A stretch of 64,000 nucleotides of DNA. Origin: Thalia democratica. Its lineage: Eukaryota. The position numbers were made by a program, and so were the translations under genes. The notes beneath the pieces were generated by a model. The model was not told where the DNA came from. It saw only the letters and a list, made by a program, of their open reading frames with translations, and ran no database searches. The number at the start of each line of letters is the position of its first letter. The stretch's first letter is position 1. Location of the stretch: contig OZ241830.1 in assembly GCA_965202585.1 (NCBI GenBank), forward strand, positions 75,206,001 to 75,270,000. Direction: 5' to 3'. Shown here one piece after another: positions 9,701-59,847 of this stretch.

Positions 9701-11136
9701 TTAGTTCGTTTTGTTATCGTTTAATATTACATATTTAAGGTTAAACAGCTACAAACCATAAATTTATTTCAACTTAAGTTTGCAGTCAAATTTAAAATGT
9801 ATTTTAAAAAATATGCCGTTATATGAATCTTCTGGAAATAAAAGAAATCTAAAACTTTCAGTATTTTACACTGAGTAAACCAAGATTTCGATATTTTGCA
9901 TACACTTTAAAATAGAAAATTATTTCTACAATACAAGAACACAAAACTTACAAGCAAGCTTAATCTAACGCTTTTTAACAAACCTTAACTTAAAACCCTA
10001 CCCGTCAATTTTTCACCCTTAAAGTCAACTTATAACTAGTTTTAATCACCATAATGACAATAGTATAAAGTTTACTTTTAAAAAACAACTTCATACATTC
10101 GTCTAAAGTCAAAAAATTGTTTAAAACTTTAAAGACTGTTAGAAACTTGATTAATCGAATCTAGATAAAAGTTTTAATTAAATTATTTACCTGATATACA
10201 AAAAATATGTTTCTTACTTGTATGGATTTATATGCATCAAAAAAAGTAGTTAATAACCATTATTACTAATAAAAACATAATTAAGGGGCAAAAGACACTT
10301 AATACCTAAAATTGTATAGAAAACAAATAAGTAGCTTTTCAAAAATGTTATTTTACTAGAAATATCACTAATTAACTACTTTTTATATATCTCTGTGACA
10401 AAAATTAAACAATCAGTGTATTTACAACTTTTTATGTGATGTCATTGTTAGAAAGTTGACGTCACCGATCAGGCCAGCAAGCTGTAACTTCATAAAACTT
10501 TTGTAGATTGACTACTGCAGGGATTTCCTTTGTTACTGACAACGGGTTTCAATAAAAAAACAAAACCCGGGTATTAGTTTACCGAATGTTTGTGGTCAGA
10601 TGATCGAAATGGAACGGTTCAACCTTTATCTTAATTTTCTTTGTGTATGTAATTACTTTAATTTTAAAGTTGTAAGACTTAATTCAAACAAAGATTTTTT
10701 TAAATTTATACAGTTACTTTAAAGTTACACATAAACTACTCAAAACTTGTTTTTTAAAACTAATACAAAAGCAAAATAATGTTTATTGAACGATTAAAAA
10801 AAGTTTGGTCTAAGGACTTGGTAGGCCAAACACCCCATCAGTTATTGAGTCGTACACAACATGCTTTAACAATTTCTTACAAGATATAAAATTAGAATGT
10901 TTAATCTGAACTTTTAAACCTTAAGATATAAAGTGATCAATAATATAAAGGAAAAGAAAAGTATGTTACCGAAAAAAAATAAAACAACGTTTTCAGCAGC
11001 ACAGTAGAATTGTCACTAAAAAACAAATTAGTATTATTTTTGTTATAGCCAATATTTATTTCAGTCATCATCAACAAAGTTGAGATGGTCGCGCTATCAA
11101 AATAAAATAATGAAGTTCAACACACGACCAACATCA

Positions 11137-11211
11137 ACAGCATCTGAGACAACCTACGACCGATTTGTCCTTACTGGGACTCATCAGGCACGCATAGTCG
11201 CTAGATGCCGC
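11137..11211 (-). ncRNA. Type I hammerhead ribozyme, degenerate paralog
   Basis: CUGAUGA-GUCC(CAGUAA)GGAC-AAA-UCGG-UC|GUAG: the G of the conserved GAAA is missing and the helix III palindrome is broken. Confidence 0.82.
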
Positions 11212-11880
11212 TTTTTTGATCTTTCGAATCGGGCTTAAGTAGAATCTACTAAAGGGACTCTTTGTGAGCAAAGTTGAAAAAGTTTTCAAACATAAAAAAA
11301 GTAAAACATTTTTTTTCATAAGGCTTTAACTTTAAAGTCTTTTTAAGCTTTAAGCATCTTAAGCTGCAAAAATAAAGTAAGTCTTAAGCTTTTATTAAAA
11401 TACCTTCCCTTTGAAACTTTTTTAAGTGAGATTTCAGAAAAAAAATATCTGTTTCATTGAACATGTTTTTGACATTTTGAAAAATTCGTTGATGTGCTGA
11501 CTTTGTACAACTTGTTTGTTAAACCAAAAGTAAAGCTTTTTTGGTTATGATATGTTTCTGAAAATTACATACTTATAGGTTATTTCCCTTAGTTTCAGTA
11601 AATCTATTTTTAATAATCTTAAAACATAATTAATTGAGATCTTAATTGGACACTTGTAAATGTTTTGCAATTAGTCACTTTTGAATGGTTATATTTCTAT
11701 GAAGATAAATTGAGAAAATATCATTAAATTTACCTGCATCTTTAATACTTTTCAGTTAACTTTTAAACCATAATTAATTATAAAACATAATTAATTATGT
11801 CACTCCAAAACTTGCATAGGTTATTGTCATATGTAAACTTACCTTTTTTGTACATATTTTGACCTTTGGGTTTCAATATT

Positions 11881-12283
11881 CAGGGTTGCCACTTTACCTG
11901 GAAACCTGGGAAAACCTTGAAAAACCTTAAATCGACAATTTAGGCAAAAATAACCTGGAATTTGAGAAATTTTGAAAAAAGACCTGGAAAAACCTGAAAT
12001 TTTTGATAATTTTAACATTTTCAGTACGTAAATTTCAATTTGACACAAAAAAATCTATCATATAAATAACTTTTTTTTGACATCATCAAAAAATATTTCT
12101 ATTAAAAAATACATTTAAAGTAACTTTACAGCATCTTTTAAATGTTTTTGTACTATTTAACACAGCTTCTTTTATAGAAATTAACTTAAAACTAAAAATA
12201 GACTCAAACATTTTTACTTTTAAAAACCTAGAAGAAATTTGGAAAACCTGGAAATTTTTTTGAAAAAACGAGTGGCAACCCTG
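11881..12283. mobile_element. MITE with CAGGGTTGCCAC TIRs and 6-bp TSD (AATATT)
   Basis: TIRs at both ends; AATATT at 11875-11880 and 12284-12289; empty site in repeat copy 2 (near 57145); internal CCTGGAAA direct subrepeats. Confidence 0.92.
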
Positions 12284-12308
12284 AATATTGTGGTCCAACT
12301 AATTGAAA

Positions 12309-12735
12309 CAGAGTTGCCACACACTCAGGGAATTCAGGGAAACTCAGGGAATTTTAAAGTTACAGAAAATCTCAGGGAAACTCAGGGAATTTTGATTCTT
12401 TTTTATTAACTCTGGGAAACTCAGTTTTGGTTTTTTCTAAAAATTTTAGGGAAATTTTAAATAGTCTCAGGGAAATTTTTCTTTAGATCTAGATTGTAGA
12501 ATAAGATTTAGTTAATCGAGTTTCAATATTTTGTTCAAAAAAGTTAATTTTATTTATTTTAAGTGCTTATTTAGGAATTTTTTAGCCTTGCGGCTACTTT
12601 TTCAATATGTTTATTGATAAATATTTTTTTAAGAATTAAAAAAAGACTCAGGAAAACTCAGGGAAGTTTAAGGTTACTCAGGAAAGTTTCTGGTCACACA
12701 GGGAAGATTTTTTGACTCGAAGAGTGGCAACCCTG
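12309..12735. mobile_element. MITE with CAG(A/G)GTTGCCAC TIRs and 6-bp TSD (TTGAAA)
   Basis: TTGAAA at 12303-12308 and 12736-12741; empty site in copy 2; CTCAGGGAA direct subrepeats. Confidence 0.92.
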
Positions 12736-13949
12736 TTGAAATATCAAACCATCATGAGAACCATATGCAAAATACTTATTATTTTAGAAAGAAAAAATTT
12801 TATCACATATGGCAAACACTCATTTTGGTGAAAACTACAAAATCAAACATCACAATTTTCTATAAAATAAAATTCTAAACCAGCCACTCTAAAATAAATT
12901 GTAAAAATTACCTACTTAAAACACAAAAATAGCATTATTAAGAAACAAAACAATTTTAGGCTTTTGTGGTGTCCAACATTTTATTTAAAAACTGGCTCTT
13001 ATTTAAAATCTTATTTAATTTTATAAGATACTTTTTATTAAATAAATAAAAAAGTAAATTTTAAGAATAACCAGTCTTGACAAATGTTTCCTGGACAAGA
13101 GGTTTAGAGGTATATGTGGTGTGCCACAATTAACAAGAAGGTTCTTAGTGGACAAGGTCTAGAACAAAATATTTTAATTTTTTTTTTTTTGTGGTTTGTC
13201 CTATACAAATGGTAACCATTTAACCTCAAAATATAGAACTTGAAATTAAATACAAAATAAATAAAAAAAAACCTGAGCTTGTTGCATTTTTGTAAAAACC
13301 TTACTTTTATGTACTTCTTGTGGAAATAAAATTAGGTCTTTAGTTTTATATGCACAGACTGATCAAGATTACAGGAAATTTTAAGCTTTATTTTCAAAAT
13401 GAAATTTTTGCTTTGCCCTGCTAATGACATTTTTATAGTTAGCAGTATATTTGCGGGTTTATATTCATATTGTTTTATCTTGTGTACCAAACCTAGAAAT
13501 TACATTATATTTTTTTAGTAATTTGTTTTTGTATTCTTGTACATCATCTCAACATGACTTACTCTTCCTATAAATACTTAGAAACTTTCAAAAGAAAAAT
13601 CCGTTTATGATGTCATAATCAACATAAAAACACTAATAACTTAAATTTAGTACAAGTAATACAAGTATGAATATAAAACACAAATATGCAGCTAACTATA
13701 GAAACATATTCAACAATAATTCTTATAATAGTTGAAATGACATTCATTTACATCATTTTTCATGGTTAGAATGGCACTGTCCTTCATAAGTATTGTCTTT
13801 ATTATTCTGATGTAAATATGATCAAAATAAACAGAAAAAAATTATTAGTTAAAAAAGCTAAAATTTAAGTTGAGAACAACACTAACTTAAAATTATCTTT
13901 AAAAGCTGAACATAGACCTAACAAAACAACATTTTTAAATAAAAATAAA

Positions 13950-14521
13950 GGGCATAGGGGGGGGGGGGGTAAAAATACTTTTTTCACAATTTTATCTTGT
14001 TTTATATATTTTTTACTGAGCTACATGATGTAGCTTAAAATTTTTTTGAGATATTGCCAGTCAAAGTCGGAGGCAACAGTAGGTTCTTTATAGGAGGCGC
14101 AAACTAAAACAACAAATAGTTAAAAATCACTATAAATCTATAACTTACGTTTTTTGAGATAACTACCTTAAATTTTTAGGAAATGTTCTTTGCTTTTTTT
14201 GTTTATTTTTATATAAAATTTTCAACTTTTATAAAATTCTTTTTAACGGAATCTTCTTAATATATCAAAGAACACTTCCTGAGATTTTGAGGCAGTTATC
14301 TCAAAAAACAAAGATGAAGATAAATTTTTAGTGATTTAGTCTATTTTTGCTGTTTTAGTTTGTGACTCCCATAAAAAATCTTTTGTTGCCTCCGACTTTG
14401 ACCAGCTATATCTCAAAAGTTATTTTGAATTTTTAAATCTGTTAAAAGCATCTTGTAGCCTAGCAAAAATATATAAAATAAGATCAAATTCTGAAAAAAG
14501 TGAATTATCCCCCATATGCCC
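13950..14521. mobile_element. TTAA-inserting MITE (GGGCATA...TATGCCC), Kolobok-like
   Basis: GGG...CCC termini flanked by TAAA/TTAA. Sits inside an older related element whose remainder is at about 14526-15098. Paralog at 58388-59034. Confidence 0.8.
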
Positions 14522-16477
14522 TTAACATTGGCTCTTATATGAAAGCTTAAACTAAAGTCAGTTTTTATAGATATAAAATTTTTAGTTATATTTTGAAATA
14601 ATGATGTTCTTGTAAAAAGATTCCAATACAAACTACCACAAATTTTTCAGGTTCAATTTTCTTGGAAGTTAAAAAAATCACTAAAATTCTATCTCTTAAA
14701 TTTTTTGACCACAAATTTTCAGCAAACATTGCTTTTATAATTTGAAAGACTTATAGTGTTAGGTTTTAGATAGAAAAATCAAAAAAATAGATGGTTTTTT
14801 TCAGAAAATTTTTATTTTTCGAAGTTAAAAAAATTGCTGCACTAAATCAAGTAAAATATTAGTAATGGAATTACTATGAAAATTTGAAGAAGATTCATTA
14901 AAAAAAGGAGAAAAATCTTTTTACGCGCTTTTAATTAGTGCCTTCTATTAGCAACCTAGTGAGGTCACTACCTTTGATTGCTTATATCTCAAAAATTACT
15001 TTGAATTTTGATAAGTGGTTCAAAACGTATGATAGCTAAGAATAAACTCTACAAAATAAGATTGACTTGTAAAAATCAAGAAGAAATCTCTCTATTCCCT
15101 TACTGAAGTGACACTATTATTAACAGTTTAAGAGACACCTAAGTTTCCAGATAAAATGAAATTCAGTAGTATATGTTCATTAGCGTTATAGTTCAAGTGT
15201 TTTTATTTTGAAAACAAAGCTAAAAATTCTTTTAAATTGAATTTTTAAGTGTAAATATAAAACTAAGGATAACCCAAAATTACTGCACTTATAAAATTTA
15301 TATATGTGCTTTTATTGATAATAGCAATTTTTTTCTACTTTCATAGCTTTGTTGGAGTGTGTTATCTTGTTAACTCACAGAAGCATGGGTTTATTTTTAT
15401 AACGAAAGAGTACTGTTAAAATTTGTTATTAATATATGTGCTTAGTAGGTAGACTTTTGTCTCAGTTTCTAGTTTGTACATGATCCAAGTTATGACAGTT
15501 ATGACATCTATTTGCTCATGAATAAATAGAATCCCATTTTATTCTTCTTTCATAAGTGAAACTTAGTCACTGTCTGAATTAAGCACTTAATTAAAATAAA
15601 ACTTAGTTCAAAATAATTTATACAAGTTTACAATTACAGACAATGTTTGTCAATAGATTAATAATTTTTTTTCTAGAGTCATCTACCATAGGCTATGAAT
15701 CATATGCAACTAGTGTGAAAATAGTTGGAGTGAAGCTAGAAGCTGAAATATTCTACATTTTTTGAGAATTGCAACCAAAATTTCAGTAGGCAAAAAATAT
15801 GGAAAATTATAAATGAGTTAGTTTTCGTGAAAATTAAACGATAAGTATTTTTAAAACTAAATTTTTAAACTTTTATATATTATAGTTCGGTCAACTATAA
15901 ATTATCAATAAAAGAAGTTAGTGATACATATACTTAATGCAAATTAGGCATTTATGATTTCAACTTGATACTTTTAGTAGTAATGGCTGTTTTTATTCAT
16001 TTTCTATTTCTATACATGTTTAAAGTTTTAGGTAACTGATAGTATTTAATTTTACTAGTTTAAGTACTTGAAATTTTAGGACCTCCTCTTTGTTAAAAGA
16101 GAATTTACACTTTTTGTTAGACCAAATGCTATTTATAAAAATTATCCTAATTGTTTTTATTACTTATATATGGTTATATTTCCTTGAAATAATATTGAAG
16201 TAATTGTCTAAAAGTTAAAAAAAAATTATCATTTGTTGGTATATTTTTGTGTTTTTATGATCTAAGTTATTAATTACTATTAAAAAACTAAAATATGTAG
16301 CTAGTGGTTTGGAGAACGTTATTGAAGACATAAATTGAATAAATAAGGCTTTTAATATGAACAGTTTGACCTCAAATTTCTGATTATTCTTTAGAAAAAA
16401 TTAATGAATATTAGTTTTCTAGATATTTCAAAAAATAAACTTTTTTTGATTTAAATTAAAAATGTTTTACTCTATAT

Positions 16478-33390: not shown

Positions 33391-33553
33391 ATGTCACAAA
33401 AAATTAAGAGTCTTCACCTAAAACTTAACTCTTGTTATTTTTGTCAGTATTTATTTCGGCCATCATCAACAAAGTTAAGATGTTTTATGCCATCAATAAT
33501 AAACAATGAACTTCACCGCACGACCAACAACAACAGCATCCGAGACAACATCC
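33391..33553 (-). repeat. Third, truncated copy of the sequence downstream of the hammerhead cleavage site
   Basis: Homologous to about 11005-11157 and 56290-56424 (catcatcaacaaagtt...cacgaccaacaacaacagcatccgagacaac). Similarity stops at 33553, which aligns to 56424. Confidence 0.8.
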
Positions 33554-54214: not shown

Positions 54215-54828
54215 GTACAAATTGCACGAAGACAAAATTGCAAGAGGTTACTAAATTGCACGAGGGGACTAAATTGCACGAGGGAACAAAATTGCACGAG
54301 GGCACAATATTCCATGAGAGAATAAAATTCACGAAGATAATTTTGCACCAAGTGTCTGATTTGCACGAGTTACATTTTTGCAAGAGAGTAAAAAATACAG
54401 AAAAAATAAAATAAATAAAAGATAATTTTATTACAAAATTAAAAATACTGACTGAGGGTAAGGGTAACAGTCATCGTAAAAATAAAAGTATTAATTTTTT
54501 TATTATTATTTTTTTAACAAAAAAAAATTATAAAGAAATAACTCACCGACCGAGGGTTAGGGGTAACAGTGATAGTTAAAAACTATATTTATTTAAATAA
54601 ATTAAAATTTAATTTAATAAAACAATTAAAAAAAAAACCGTAAAAAAATTTCTCCGTGCATAGTTGTCTGCTCGTGCAAAAGTGTTTTCGTGCAAAAGTG
54701 TTTTTGTGCAAAAGTATCTTCGTGCAATTTTATCCCCTCAAGCAAAAGTATCCTCGTGAAATTTTGAGCACTCATGCAATTTTTCCCCTCGTGCAATTTT
54801 GTACGCTCGCGCAAATTTAACAGCTACC
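54215..54828. mobile_element. Foldback-type non-autonomous element with inverted arrays of AAATTGCACGAG units
   Basis: Left arm has tandem AAATTGCACGAG units, right arm CTCGTGCAA(A/T)TT units; AT-rich centre with GGGTTAG/GGGTAAC motifs; right end CTACC followed by TTAA; left terminus eroded. Confidence 0.75.
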
Positions 54829-56403
54829 TTAAACTTTTATAATTCAATCAACATGCCTTTATTATTAGTCAAATTAAAATAAATTATAAAAATATTTTTT
54901 TGTTTTTCATTAAAGCGTTTTTGACTTTTTTAGGAAACAAGAAATATTAAATAAAAATTAAGCCAATAGTATGCATTAACTACAATTTAAATAGTTTTTA
55001 AAATTGCAGATTTTTTTTTCCTTTAGGAACTTTTTGAACAAATTTAGTGAAAAATTTATAATTTTAGAATTTTTTTTCAAAATTAAGTAACTATTACAAT
55101 TTTTAAGTAATTGGATACGGATCCGACCGGATTTTAGGATACTGATCTATTATTTAAATTAAGATCTTGCTTTTATGTTACATCAATGTTCTTTAATTTG
55201 TTTTTAATCGGGATATTAACAAAAAAGGCTAGGTTTTGTAGATCACTACTGCTAACACACATTAAAAAGTTACTCACTGTTTTGTTCTAAAAGCAACACT
55301 ATTTTACTTATAAGTTTTTAAATAGTATTTATATTAATATTTGTTATAAATAAGTTATATCAGAATGTTTATAAGAGTATGAAGATAAGAATACTTTACT
55401 TAGCTGAAATAAGAAACACAAGAATTAGTTTTAACAGCTATTATTAATAAAAAAACGCTTAAAATTTGGAAAAAACGCTGTATGGATTTATATGCATTAA
55501 AAAAAGTAGTATCACTAATAAAGACATAATTAAAGTTCAAAAGAGACTTAATACCTAACGTTTTTGAAATAATTATAAAAAACAAATAAGTAGCTTTTCA
55601 AAAATGTTATTTTATTAGAAATATCACAGATTAGTTATTTAATGTATATTTGTGTGACAAAATAAAATAATCAGTGTATTTACAACTTTTTATGTGATGT
55701 CATTATTATAAATTTGACGTCACTGATATGGCCAGCAAGCTATAAATTCATAAAACTTTTGTAGATTGACTACTGCAGGTTTTTTTGTTGTTACTGACTA
55801 CCAGTTTCAATAAAAAACAAAACCTGGGTATCAGTTTACCGAATGTTTGTGGTCAGATGATCAAAATGGAACGATTCAACTTTTATCTTAGTTTTCTTTG
55901 TGTATGTAAATATTTTAATTTCAAGGTTGTTAAACTTAATTCAAACAAAAATTTTTTTAAATTTTATACAGCTACTTTGAAGTTACACATAAACTCCTCA
56001 CAACTTGTTTTTTAAAACTAATACAAAAGAAAAATTTATAATATGTATATTGTTTATTCAACGATAAAAAAGCGCTCAAAAAGTTTAGTCTGAGAACTTG
56101 GTAGGTGAAAAAACCTATCAGTTATCGAGTCGTACACAACATGCTTTAACAATTTCTTACAAGATATAAAATTAGAATGTTTTATCGAAACTTTTAAACC
56201 TTAAGATATAAAGCAATCAATAATATAAAGGAAAAGAAAAAAAGTATTTTACCGAAAAAAATAAAACAATGTTTTCAGCAGCACAATAAAAAATTACTAT
56301 TATTTTTGTAATAACCAATTTTTATTTCAGCCATTATCAACAAAATTGAGATGGTCGCGCTATCAAATCAAAAATAATAAAGTTCAACACACGACCAACA
56401 TCA

Positions 56404-56482
56404 ACAGCATCTGAGACAACCTACGACCGGTTTCGTCCTTAATAGGACTCATCAGGCACGCATAGTCGCTAGATACCGCTGT
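56404..56482 (-). ncRNA. Type I hammerhead ribozyme, intact catalytic core
   Basis: Minus strand reads ...GCGACUAUGCGUGC-CUGAUGA-GUCCU(AUUA)AGGAC-GAAA-CCGG-UC|GUAGGUUGUCUCAGAUGCUGU. All core nucleotides are present, with a 5-bp stem II, GUC cleavage triplet, palindromic helix III (ACCGGU) and extended bulged stem I. Predicted cut between 56425 and 56424. Confidence 0.9.
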
Positions 56483-58387
56483 TTTGATCTTACCAAGCGG
56501 GCTTAAGTAAAAACTACTAAAGGGACTCTTTGTGAGCAAAGTTGAAAAAGTTTTTAAGCATAAAAAAAAAACATTTATTTTCATACGGCTTTAACTTTAA
56601 AGTCTTTTTAAGCTTTAAGCTTCTTAAGCTGCAAAAATAAAGTAAGTCTTAAGCTTTTATTAAAATCCCTTCCCTTTGAAACTTTTTTAAGTGAGATTTC
56701 AGAAAAAAAATATCTGTTCCATTAAAAATATTTTAGACATTTTGAAAATTTCGGTGATGTGCTGACTTAGTACAACTTGTTTGTTAAACCAAAATTAAAG
56801 CTTTTTAGGTAATAGTAATATGTTTCTTAAAATTACACATTTCTAGGTTATTTCCCTTAGTTTCAGTAAATTTAATTTTAATAATCCTAGAACATAATTA
56901 ATTGAGATCTTAATTAAAGACTTGTAAATGTATTGCAATTAGTCACTTTTGGATGAACATATTTGTATGAAGGTAAATTTAGAAAATTACATAACATATA
57001 CCTGCACCTTTAAAACTTTTCAGTTAATTATTAAAACATAATTAATTATTAAAACATAATTAATTATATCTTTTCTAAACTTGTATAGGTCATTGTCATA
57101 TGTAAAGTTACCTTTTTTGTACATATTTTGACCTTTGGGTTTCAAAATTGCGGTCCAACTAATTTAAATATCAAACCATCATGAGAACCCTAAGCAAAAT
57201 ACCTATTATTTTAGGAAGAAAATATTGTATCGCATTTGGCAAACACTCATTTTGGTGTAAACTACAAAATCAAACATCACTATTTTCTAGAAAATAAAGT
57301 CCAAAACCAGCTACTCTAAAATAAAATGTAAAAATTACCTACTTAAAACACAAAAAAAGCATTATTAAGAAACAACACAATTTAAGGTGTTTGTGGTGTC
57401 CAACATTTTATCTAAAAACTGGCCCTTATTTAAAATATAATTTATTTTCAAAACATACTTATTATTATACAAAAAAAAAGTTAATTTTTAAGAATAATCA
57501 GTCTTGACAAATATTTCCTGGACAAGAGGTTAAAAGGTATCTGTGGTGTGCCACTATTTAACAAGAAGGTTCTAAGTGGACAAGGTCCTAAAACGAAATA
57601 TTTTAATCTTTTTTTTGTTGTTTGTCTTATACAGATGGTAACCATTTAACCTGAAAATATAGAACTTGAAAATAAAGACAAAATAAACAAAAAAAAAACC
57701 TGAACATTTTTACATTTCTGTAGCAACCTTACTTTTATGTTCTTTTATGGTGGAAAAACTTTATTTAACAAAATTGGGTCCTTAGTTTTACTTGCACAGA
57801 CTTTGATTAAGATTACAGGAAATTTTAGGCTTTATTTTCAAAATGAAACTTTTTGCTTTGCCCTGCTAATGACATTCTTAAAGTTAGCAGTATATTTGCA
57901 TCTTTACATTCATATTGTTTTATCTTGTGTACAAAACCTACAAGTTACATTATATTTTTTTAGTACTTTGTATTTGTGTTCTTGTACATCATCTCAACAT
58001 GACTTACTCTTCACTCTAAATAATTACAATTTTTTATAAGTAAAAATCCATTTATGATTTCATAGTCAACATAAAAACACTAATAACTGAAATTTAGTAC
58101 AAGTATGAATATAAAACACAAAAATGCAGCTAACTATAGAAACATATTCAACAATAATTCTTATAATAGTTGAAATGACGTTCAATTACATCATTTTTCA
58201 TTGGTAGAATGGCACTGTCCTTCATAAGTATTGTCTTTAGTATTCTGATGTAAATATGATCAAAATAAACAGAAAAAAATTATTAGTTAAAAAAGCTAAA
58301 ATTTAAGTTGGTAACAACACTAACTTAAAATTATCTTTAAAAGCTGAACATAGACCTAACAAAACAACATTTTTTAATAAAAATAAA

Positions 58388-59034
58388 GGGCATAGGGGGG
58401 GGTAAAAATACTTTTTTCACAATTTTATCTTGTTTTATATACTTTTTACTGAGCTACATGATGTAGCTTAAAAATTTTTTGAGATATTGCCAGTCAAAGT
58501 CGGAGGCAACAGTAGGTTCTTTATAGGAGGCGCAAACTAAAACAACAAATAGTTAGAAATCACTATAAATCTATAACTTACGTTTTTTGAGATAACTACC
58601 TTAAATTTTTAAGAAATGTTCCTTGCAATATTTAGAAAATTCTGTGTAAATAAAATTTAGAAAAATAAAGAAATTAAAATTTTGTGATAAAAAAACAAAA
58701 AAAACTTTTTTTGTTTATTTTTTTATAAATTTTCAACTTTTATAAAATTCTTTCTAACGGAATCTTCTTAATATATCAAAGAACACTTCCTGAGATTTTG
58801 AGGCAGTTATCTCAAAAAACAAAGATGGAGATAAATTTTTAGTGATTTAGTCTATTTTTGCTGTTTTAGTTTGTGACTCCCATAAAAAACCTATTGTTGC
58901 CTCCGACTTTGACCAGCCATATCTCAAAAGTTATTTTGAATTTTATAAATCTGTAAAAAGCATCTTGTAGCCTAGCAAAAACTATATAAAATAAGATCAA
59001 ATTCTGAAAAAAGTGAATTATCCCCCATATGCCC
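58388..59034. mobile_element. Kolobok-like MITE, paralog in repeat copy 2
   Basis: Same termini and site as 13950-14521, with about 75 bp of extra internal sequence. Confidence 0.8.
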
Positions 59035-59847
59035 TTAACATTGGCTCTTATATGAAAGCTTAAACTAAAGTCAGTTTTTATAGATAAAAAATTTTTAGTT
59101 ATATTTTGAAATATAGATGTTTTTGTAAAAAGATTCCAATACAAACTACCACAAATTTTTCAGGGTCAATTTTCTTGGAAGTTGAAAAAATCACTAAAAT
59201 TCTATCTCTTAAATTTTTGACCACAAATTTTCAGCAAACATTGCTTTTATAATTTAAAAGACTTATAGTGTTAGGTTTTAGATAGAAAAATCAAAAAAAT
59301 AGATGTTTTTTTTTAGAAAATTTTTATTTTTCAAAGTTAAAAAAATTGCTGCACTAAATCAAGTAAAATATTAGTAATGGAATTACTATAAAAATTTGAA
59401 GGAGATTCATTAAAAAATGAAGAAAAAACTTTTTTTGTGCTTTTAGTTAGTGCCTTCCATTAGCAAACTAGTGAGGTCACCGCCTTTGATTGCTTATATC
59501 TCAAAAATTACTTTGAATTTTGATAAGTGGTTCAAAACGTATGATAGCTAAGATTAAACCTACAAAATAAAATTAACTTGTAAAAATCAAGAAGAACCCC
59601 TCTATTCCCTTCATGAAGTGGCACTATTATTAACAGTTTAAGAGACACCCAATTTTCTGAATAAAATGAAATTCAGTAGTATATGTTCATTAGCAAAGCA
59701 ATTGTTTTTATTTGAAAACAAAGCTGAAAATTCCTTTAAATTGAATTTTTAAGTGTATATATAAAACTAAGGATAACCCAAAATTACTGCACTTTCATAG
59801 CTTTGTTGGAGTGTGTTAACTTGTTAACACACAGAAATTATAAAATA

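Follow-up and report, generated by a model that had tools for sequence, protein, structure and literature searches.

A type I hammerhead ribozyme in a dispersed family of ORF-less repeats from Thalia democratica

The window, a 64,000-nt stretch of the Thalia democratica genome, contains on its minus strand a motif at positions 56404-56482 which, as judged from its sequence, is a real hammerhead ribozyme with an intact core, for which self-cleavage is predicted. We consider it probable that the motif belongs, as its hammerhead, to a family of non-autonomous retroelements without ORFs, the units of which are about 327 nt long, and that this family is an animal non-LTR retrozyme whose insertions carry the marks of Penelope-like elements. 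The sequence-only reading of the window had proposed a type I hammerhead from a retroelement of the Penelope or retrozyme kind that possibly acts as a dimer. This proposal was borne out by the thousands of copies in the genome, the ORF-less arrays with a period of 327 bp and the TSDs, and also by compensatory changes in stem I, a helix III of six base pairs that can form between two ACCGGU stretches and a match to the Rfam model HH9, with cleavage itself standing as a prediction.

The hammerhead motif in the window

The motif is read on the minus strand from position 56482 to position 56404. It starts with the 5' strand of stem I (56482-56456), followed by the CUGAUGA box (56455-56449), helix II (56448-56435), in which GUCCU and AGGAC form five of five pairs around loop 2 with the sequence AUUA, the GAAA box (56434-56431), the palindromic loop 3 CCGG (56430-56427), U16.1 and C17 (56426-56425) and the 3' strand of stem I (56424-56404). 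The predicted scissile bond is located between 56425 and 56424. The core shows zero deviations at C3 U4 G5 A6 N7 G8 A9, G12 A13 A14, A15.1:U16.1 and H17. Helix II is closed by the pair G10.1-C11.1, helix III consists of the single pair A15.1:U16.1 around CCGG, and the core is flanked by helices I and III, where helix I forms the open end. A loose core pattern gave one match in the window, as compared to 0.03 expected by chance per window, and there are 1864 exact matches to the 31-nt core (loop 2 unconstrained) in the AT-rich genome of about 800 Mb, as compared to zero for the reversed control. Thus, the earlier claim of a full hammerhead core on the minus strand, with every box present, is confirmed. 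The description of the motif as intact applies to the catalytic core, but not to the element copy, which is truncated at its 5' end and contains a single ribozyme.

All of the pairs previously listed for stem I of the window copy can form, namely UGC:GUA, CGAC:GUUG with one bulged G, and GCGGUAUCU:AGAUGCUGU with three G-U pairs, and the distal pairs are present in the MFE fold (z = -3.9 vs shuffles). However, the UAUGCG bulge that was read as part of the design is not a feature of the family, in which a proximal stem I of six base pairs is followed by a UAU bulge. A C-to-G change in the window copy turns the fourth stem I pair into G·G, which leaves three pairs, a mismatch and two pairs, so that the bulge of six nucleotides represents a defect of the window copy. 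The register of the distal part of stem I is ambiguous: a few single changes favor the register that was given earlier, and the MFE fold of a young full unit pairs ACAACAGC with GCUGUUGU. An alternative register for the motif, which appeared in the first HH9 alignment and in the RNAalifold result, places ACC/GGU in helix III and cleavage after GGUU. It was rejected, since stem I is then unpairable, and it is also broken by a subfamily with an inserted A.

The MFE fold of the window copy as a monomer is an inactive rod of -30.5 kcal/mol, as compared to -17.7 kcal/mol for the fold that is constrained to the hammerhead, and the corresponding values for a young copy are -21.2 kcal/mol for the inactive rod and -13.1 kcal/mol for the active monomer fold. 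The helix III of such a design is too weak in the monomer, and two motifs make a double hammerhead (PMC4209133). The self-duplex of ACCGGU has a predicted energy of -8.3 to -9.7 kcal/mol and would provide a stable intermolecular helix III of six base pairs. The folds of the unit gave z = -4.2 (327-nt unit) and z = -3.5 vs shuffles, and the monomer is closed by stem I.

The window copy matched no Rfam family at the gathering score, and with permissive settings the best match was Hammerhead_HH9 with 23.1 bits (E=0.0033; cut-off 52). When the Rfam hammerhead models were used as a check on the motif, as had been suggested earlier, young copies of both families described below matched HH9 over its full length and in the correct register (38.8 bits, E=1.7e-7), which supports the assignment, but the gathering score of 52 was reached by none.

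A dispersed family of ORF-less repeats

A first look across the genome gave between at least 1478 candidates for fragments of the family, when the 121-nt motif region was considered, and 1953. Neighboring core matches in direct orientation have a period of 327-328 bp, and there are also inverted pairs. Unit coordinates refer here to a 327-nt reference, a young unit that extends from cleavage site to cleavage site (L031:816-1142). To describe the architecture, we used about 60 independent insertions among 80 loci. The copies consist of 0.5-3.8 head-to-tail units with a variable 5' start, while the 3' ends are discrete and located at unit positions 56-59 or 111-116, that is, 57 or 113 nt past the cleavage site (L004-L080). 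These two 3' ends are about 55 nt apart. In many insertions, an inverted and 5'-truncated partial copy abuts the 5' end, and many simple insertions have TSDs of 7-20 bp. The units of the young family are 95-100% identical. The mean identity of units within an array is 98.5%, inverted units included, as compared to 93% between arrays, which indicates that the arrays were born as multimers from one template. The unit contains no ORF, the longest stop-free stretch being 72 codons in a dimer, and its GC content is 44%, as compared to about 25% for the genome and the window.

The idea that copies start at the cleavage site was not supported. About seven of the roughly 60 independent 5' ends fall within unit positions 1-29, as compared to about five expected, and the apparent starts at unit position 1 in L036, L066 and L069 are BLAST splits of copies that in fact begin in helix II. 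A start no more than 2 nt from the cleavage site is seen in L068 alone, while L029 and a fragment in the window start at unit positions 5-8. An identical 31-nt core is also present in a single metagenome contig from JGI (L083:194-224), the flanks of which cannot form stem I. This contig may contain a truncated copy from a related organism.

A short, non-coding and dispersed repeat with TSDs and 5' truncation could also be a SINE-like element mobilized by a LINE, or a small satellite that spreads at the DNA level, with the hammerhead as a passenger that has no role in propagation. Consistent with a passenger role, the Penelope-like elements Naiad and Chlamys thrive without hammerheads, and it has been suggested that hammerheads may parasitize such elements (PMC8557442). 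However, a tRNA search identified no tRNA-like part in the unit, and neither of the two 3' ends has a poly(A) or microsatellite tail. Moreover, the upstream inverted, truncated copies and the partial tandems are not LINE products, the arrays are short, with no more than 3.8 units, and scattered rather than organized in satellite blocks, and the ribozyme is the sole block that is identical between two nearly unalignable families. We consider this explanation very improbable.

Compensatory changes between two families

The second of these families has a unit of 328-335 bp (L037, L039 and L042-L048), and its core, helix II and loop 3 are identical to those of the first. Stem I is formed by GACUGA/UCAGUC in the second family and by GCCUGC/GUAGGU in the first, while a UNU bulge, located on the 5' strand directly after the sixth pair of stem I, has been kept in both. 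In a joint alignment, the stem I pairs 7:49, 8:48 and 12:44, which represent three of the six proximal pairs, have changed on both sides and stayed paired. Paired cells make up 95% of all cells in this alignment, with a covariation score of 0.209 vs 0.089, and none of 500 shuffles gave as high a value. The compensation in stem I involves only two to three lineages and thus few events, yet these are clean. In addition, the sixth stem I pair has changed from G:U to U:A in one subfamily, by a G-to-U substitution together with an inserted A. There is only one double change in helix II. No covariation signal was obtained within a single family, where both of the distal stem I registers are at the level of the control, because the copies are too similar (91% column identity). 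The covariation among genomic copies that had been called for is therefore present in stem I across subfamilies and families, but absent within the single family.

The ribozyme represents one block that is identical between two families that can otherwise hardly be aligned. Outside it, they share only two short, colinear blocks, AAAACGAGCGU and a 7-bp hairpin; the shared segments are L031:974-992 with L037:1300-1318 and L031:938-948 with L037:1269-1279. The hairpin is CAAUGUC-UAA-GACGUUG in one family and CAAUGUU-UUA-AACGUUG in the other, so that the loop is closed by C:G in the former and by U:A in the latter. Recognition by a reverse transcriptase or a ligase is a possible role of this hairpin.

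The window copy is a decaying relic

The whole element copy in the window (56312-56549, minus strand) has a length of 238 bp and covers unit positions 203-327 followed by 1-113, which corresponds to one 5'-truncated insertion with one ribozyme. The copy is 75-83% identical to the young unit, and no clear TSD was found around it. It is included in a segmental duplication of at least 4.3 kb, in which 55479-59836 is 86-94% identical to 10219-15382. A third copy of the duplication (L002), with 97% identity in the 121-nt region of the hammerhead, is located about 56 kb further along the chromosome. Within the window, the paralogous hammerhead in the other arm (L003; 11128-11222, minus strand) has a deletion of G12 and a loop 3 with the sequence UCGG, from which its core is predicted to be dead. 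The loss of G12 in this paralog suggests that there is no host-level constraint on the duplicated copies. A third fragment of the family (33435-33549, minus strand) contains only the part downstream of the ribozyme, without the hammerhead, and begins about 5-8 nt past the cleavage site. The window also contains two short tandem arrays of 16-18 bp units similar to AAATTGCACGAGGG, at 54219-54337 and 54672-54801, which are mutually inverted and form a 150-bp inverted repeat with the arms about 300 bp apart.

Roughly half of the older copies sampled by BLAST have mutations in the core, and the conservation of the core columns in older copies is 0.967, as compared to 0.939 elsewhere. Since the core is mutated in about half of these copies and its conservation barely exceeds that of the other columns, the older copies appear to decay neutrally. 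The intact core at 56404-56482 is therefore not evidence of a host function. That the core has remained intact in a copy with only 75-83% identity to the young units would fit co-option by the host for the processing of a minus-strand transcript, similar to HH9 in amniote genes. However, a paralog from the same duplication has lost G12, and about half of the old copies retain the core by chance alone. Furthermore, stem I is weakened, no second ribozyme on the same strand with which a dimer could be formed was identified near 56404-56482, and the locus was found in none of the RNA runs searched. Co-option is thus an extremely improbable explanation. By its sequence, the copy at 56312-56549 is instead an old and truncated relic, in which stem I is weakened and the ribozyme is present only once. 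This copy would at most nick a read-through minus-strand transcript, while the release of unit-length RNA from this copy is predicted to be impossible.

The young unit is partly covered by marine metatranscriptome RNA libraries from two studies (L031:480-1260 against runs X4-X7). The metatranscriptome contigs are many and represent both families, which suggests that the host is a marine planktonic animal. Some pieces span the cleavage site, and there is one joint with a backward step of 325 nt, which tandem DNA would equally give. The unique flank has a depth of about 12 in the same metatranscriptomes, for which DNA carry-over is possible, and contigs carry no information on ends, strand or circles, so that these libraries are weak evidence of transcription.

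Penelope-like elements and the proposed mode of propagation

The genome contains 567 GIY-YIG candidates, many of which are arranged in inverted pairs. A young Penelope-like element is represented by two ORFs that are 98% identical over 825 amino acids (L081:2373-5126, minus strand; L082:1920-4490, plus strand). Both encode the YIDD motif of the reverse transcriptase, a CxxC linker and a GIY-YIG domain, and in L081 an inverted copy of the element's own 3' end is located upstream. No hammerhead was found in the 3' UTR or in the 2 kb flanks of this family, and no similarity to the retrozyme unit was identified, including at the 3' end, in this comparison with one autonomous family. Likewise, none of five GIY-YIG matches on the listed part of contig C1 is located near a core match, and no autonomous partner with a hammerhead was found in the comparison with the one young Penelope-like family.

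These data also bear on another explanation, in which the motif would be a pLTR fragment from an autonomous Penelope-like element rather than part of a separate non-coding element. Hammerheads are known from the pLTRs of Penelope-like elements (PMC4209133, PMC8557442), the insertions have a Penelope-like architecture, and ORFs of the Penelope type are abundant in the genome. However, the repeats have a 327-bp period without an ORF, none of the sampled copies adjoins an RT ORF, and the young L081/L082 family, which has no hammerhead within its 2 kb flanks, has no sequence in common with the unit. We therefore regard an origin of the motif as a pLTR fragment as very improbable.

For the preferred explanation, a separate retrozyme family, we propose the following mode of propagation. 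The type I hammerhead would make one cut per unit in multimeric or read-through transcripts. Because helix III in the single motif consists of only A:U and the CCGG loop, a double hammerhead is most likely the active form, with a helix III of six base pairs between two ACCGGU stretches. The resulting unit-length RNA would be closed by the long stem I and probably circularized by a host ligase. It would then be copied by an enzyme with a Penelope-type reverse transcriptase and GIY-YIG domain, presumably from one of the two fixed 3' sites. The resulting insertions would be truncated at the 5' end, would often contain several units, and would have a TSD and an inverted partial copy upstream.

A more specific version, which we regard as speculative and rather unlikely to be correct, is that the retrozymes are mobilized in trans by a Penelope-like element that has a C-terminal endonuclease and lacks a ribozyme. 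The circular unit RNA would then be reverse transcribed by a rolling-circle mechanism from the sites at 57 and 113 nt, and the conserved hairpin, CAAUGUY-UWA-RACGUUG, would serve as the recognition element for the enzyme or the ligase. If true, this would explain the multi-unit arrays and why direct and inverted units are near-identical at birth.

Comparison with known systems

Both the ribozyme design and the class of element are already present in the literature (PMC4209133, PMC7229834, PMC8557442, 10.64898/2026.07.22.740005), and the kind has been described since 2014-2020. With the Thalia family, the list of animal genomes that contain thousands of retrozymes with hammerheads grows by one. 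Since the family is young, with units that are 95-100% identical, it would be a convenient system in which to test how retrozymes are copied. Features that are useful for such tests are the fixed 3' ends, the arrays born as multimers, the upstream inverted copies and the ribozyme-less Penelope-like family. The copy at 56404-56482 is an ordinary decaying insertion that matters mainly for repeat annotation.

The metazoan non-LTR retrozymes (Cervera and de la Pena 2020, PMC7229834; 10.64898/2026.07.22.740005) are ORF-less units of 170-400 bp, as compared to 327-335 bp here. They are similar to the Thalia families in having one type I hammerhead per unit, a head-to-tail arrangement, a GC content below 45%, highly self-paired RNA and TSDs longer than 4 bp. 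In contrast to what has been emphasized for retrozymes, the arrays are short here, with at most about four units, the 3' ends are fixed at two positions, and inverted partial copies are located upstream. The window copy differs in being a single partial unit, and the family is known here from DNA arrays. An origin of retrozymes from the pLTRs of Penelope-like elements has been proposed in a preprint by Li, Clavereau and Pollet 2026 (10.64898/2026.07.22.740005).

Penelope-like elements have the same 5' truncation, partial tandems, adjacent inverted and 5'-truncated copy and variable TSDs (PMC8557442). Among these insertion marks, the window copy itself shows only the truncation, the others being features of the family. 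The non-autonomous derivatives of Chlamys also make head-to-tail multicopy insertions (PMC8557442). However, unlike in Penelope-like elements, the unit has no ORF for a reverse transcriptase or endonuclease, and the autonomous L081/L082 family has neither a hammerhead nor a 3' end in common with it. The spacing of about 55 nt between the 3' ends also differs from the "tail" of 30-40 bp in Penelope-like elements (PMC8557442).

The ribozyme resembles the canonical metazoan type I hammerheads, such as those in Schistosoma Sm-alpha, newt satellite 2 and HH9 (PMC4209133), with which it shares the core and the G10.1-C11.1 pair. The likeness includes a stem I of six base pairs with a bulge that starts with U, a helix II of 4-5 bp with an A-rich loop, and a helix III of one base pair with a palindromic loop of four nucleotides, for which a dimeric active form is expected. 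HH9 differs in that it has a helix III of three base pairs and is located in conserved amniote genes, while stem I of the window copy is interrupted by a G·G mismatch. The min-HHR of metazoan Penelope-like elements (PMC4209133) are similar with respect to the Penelope-type insertion and the need for a dimer. However, they lack loop 3, combine a long helix II (7-8 bp) with a short helix I (4-5 bp) and have an additional nucleotide ahead of helix II. Based on these sequence features, the motif in the window is assigned to the canonical metazoan type I design and not to the min-HHR.
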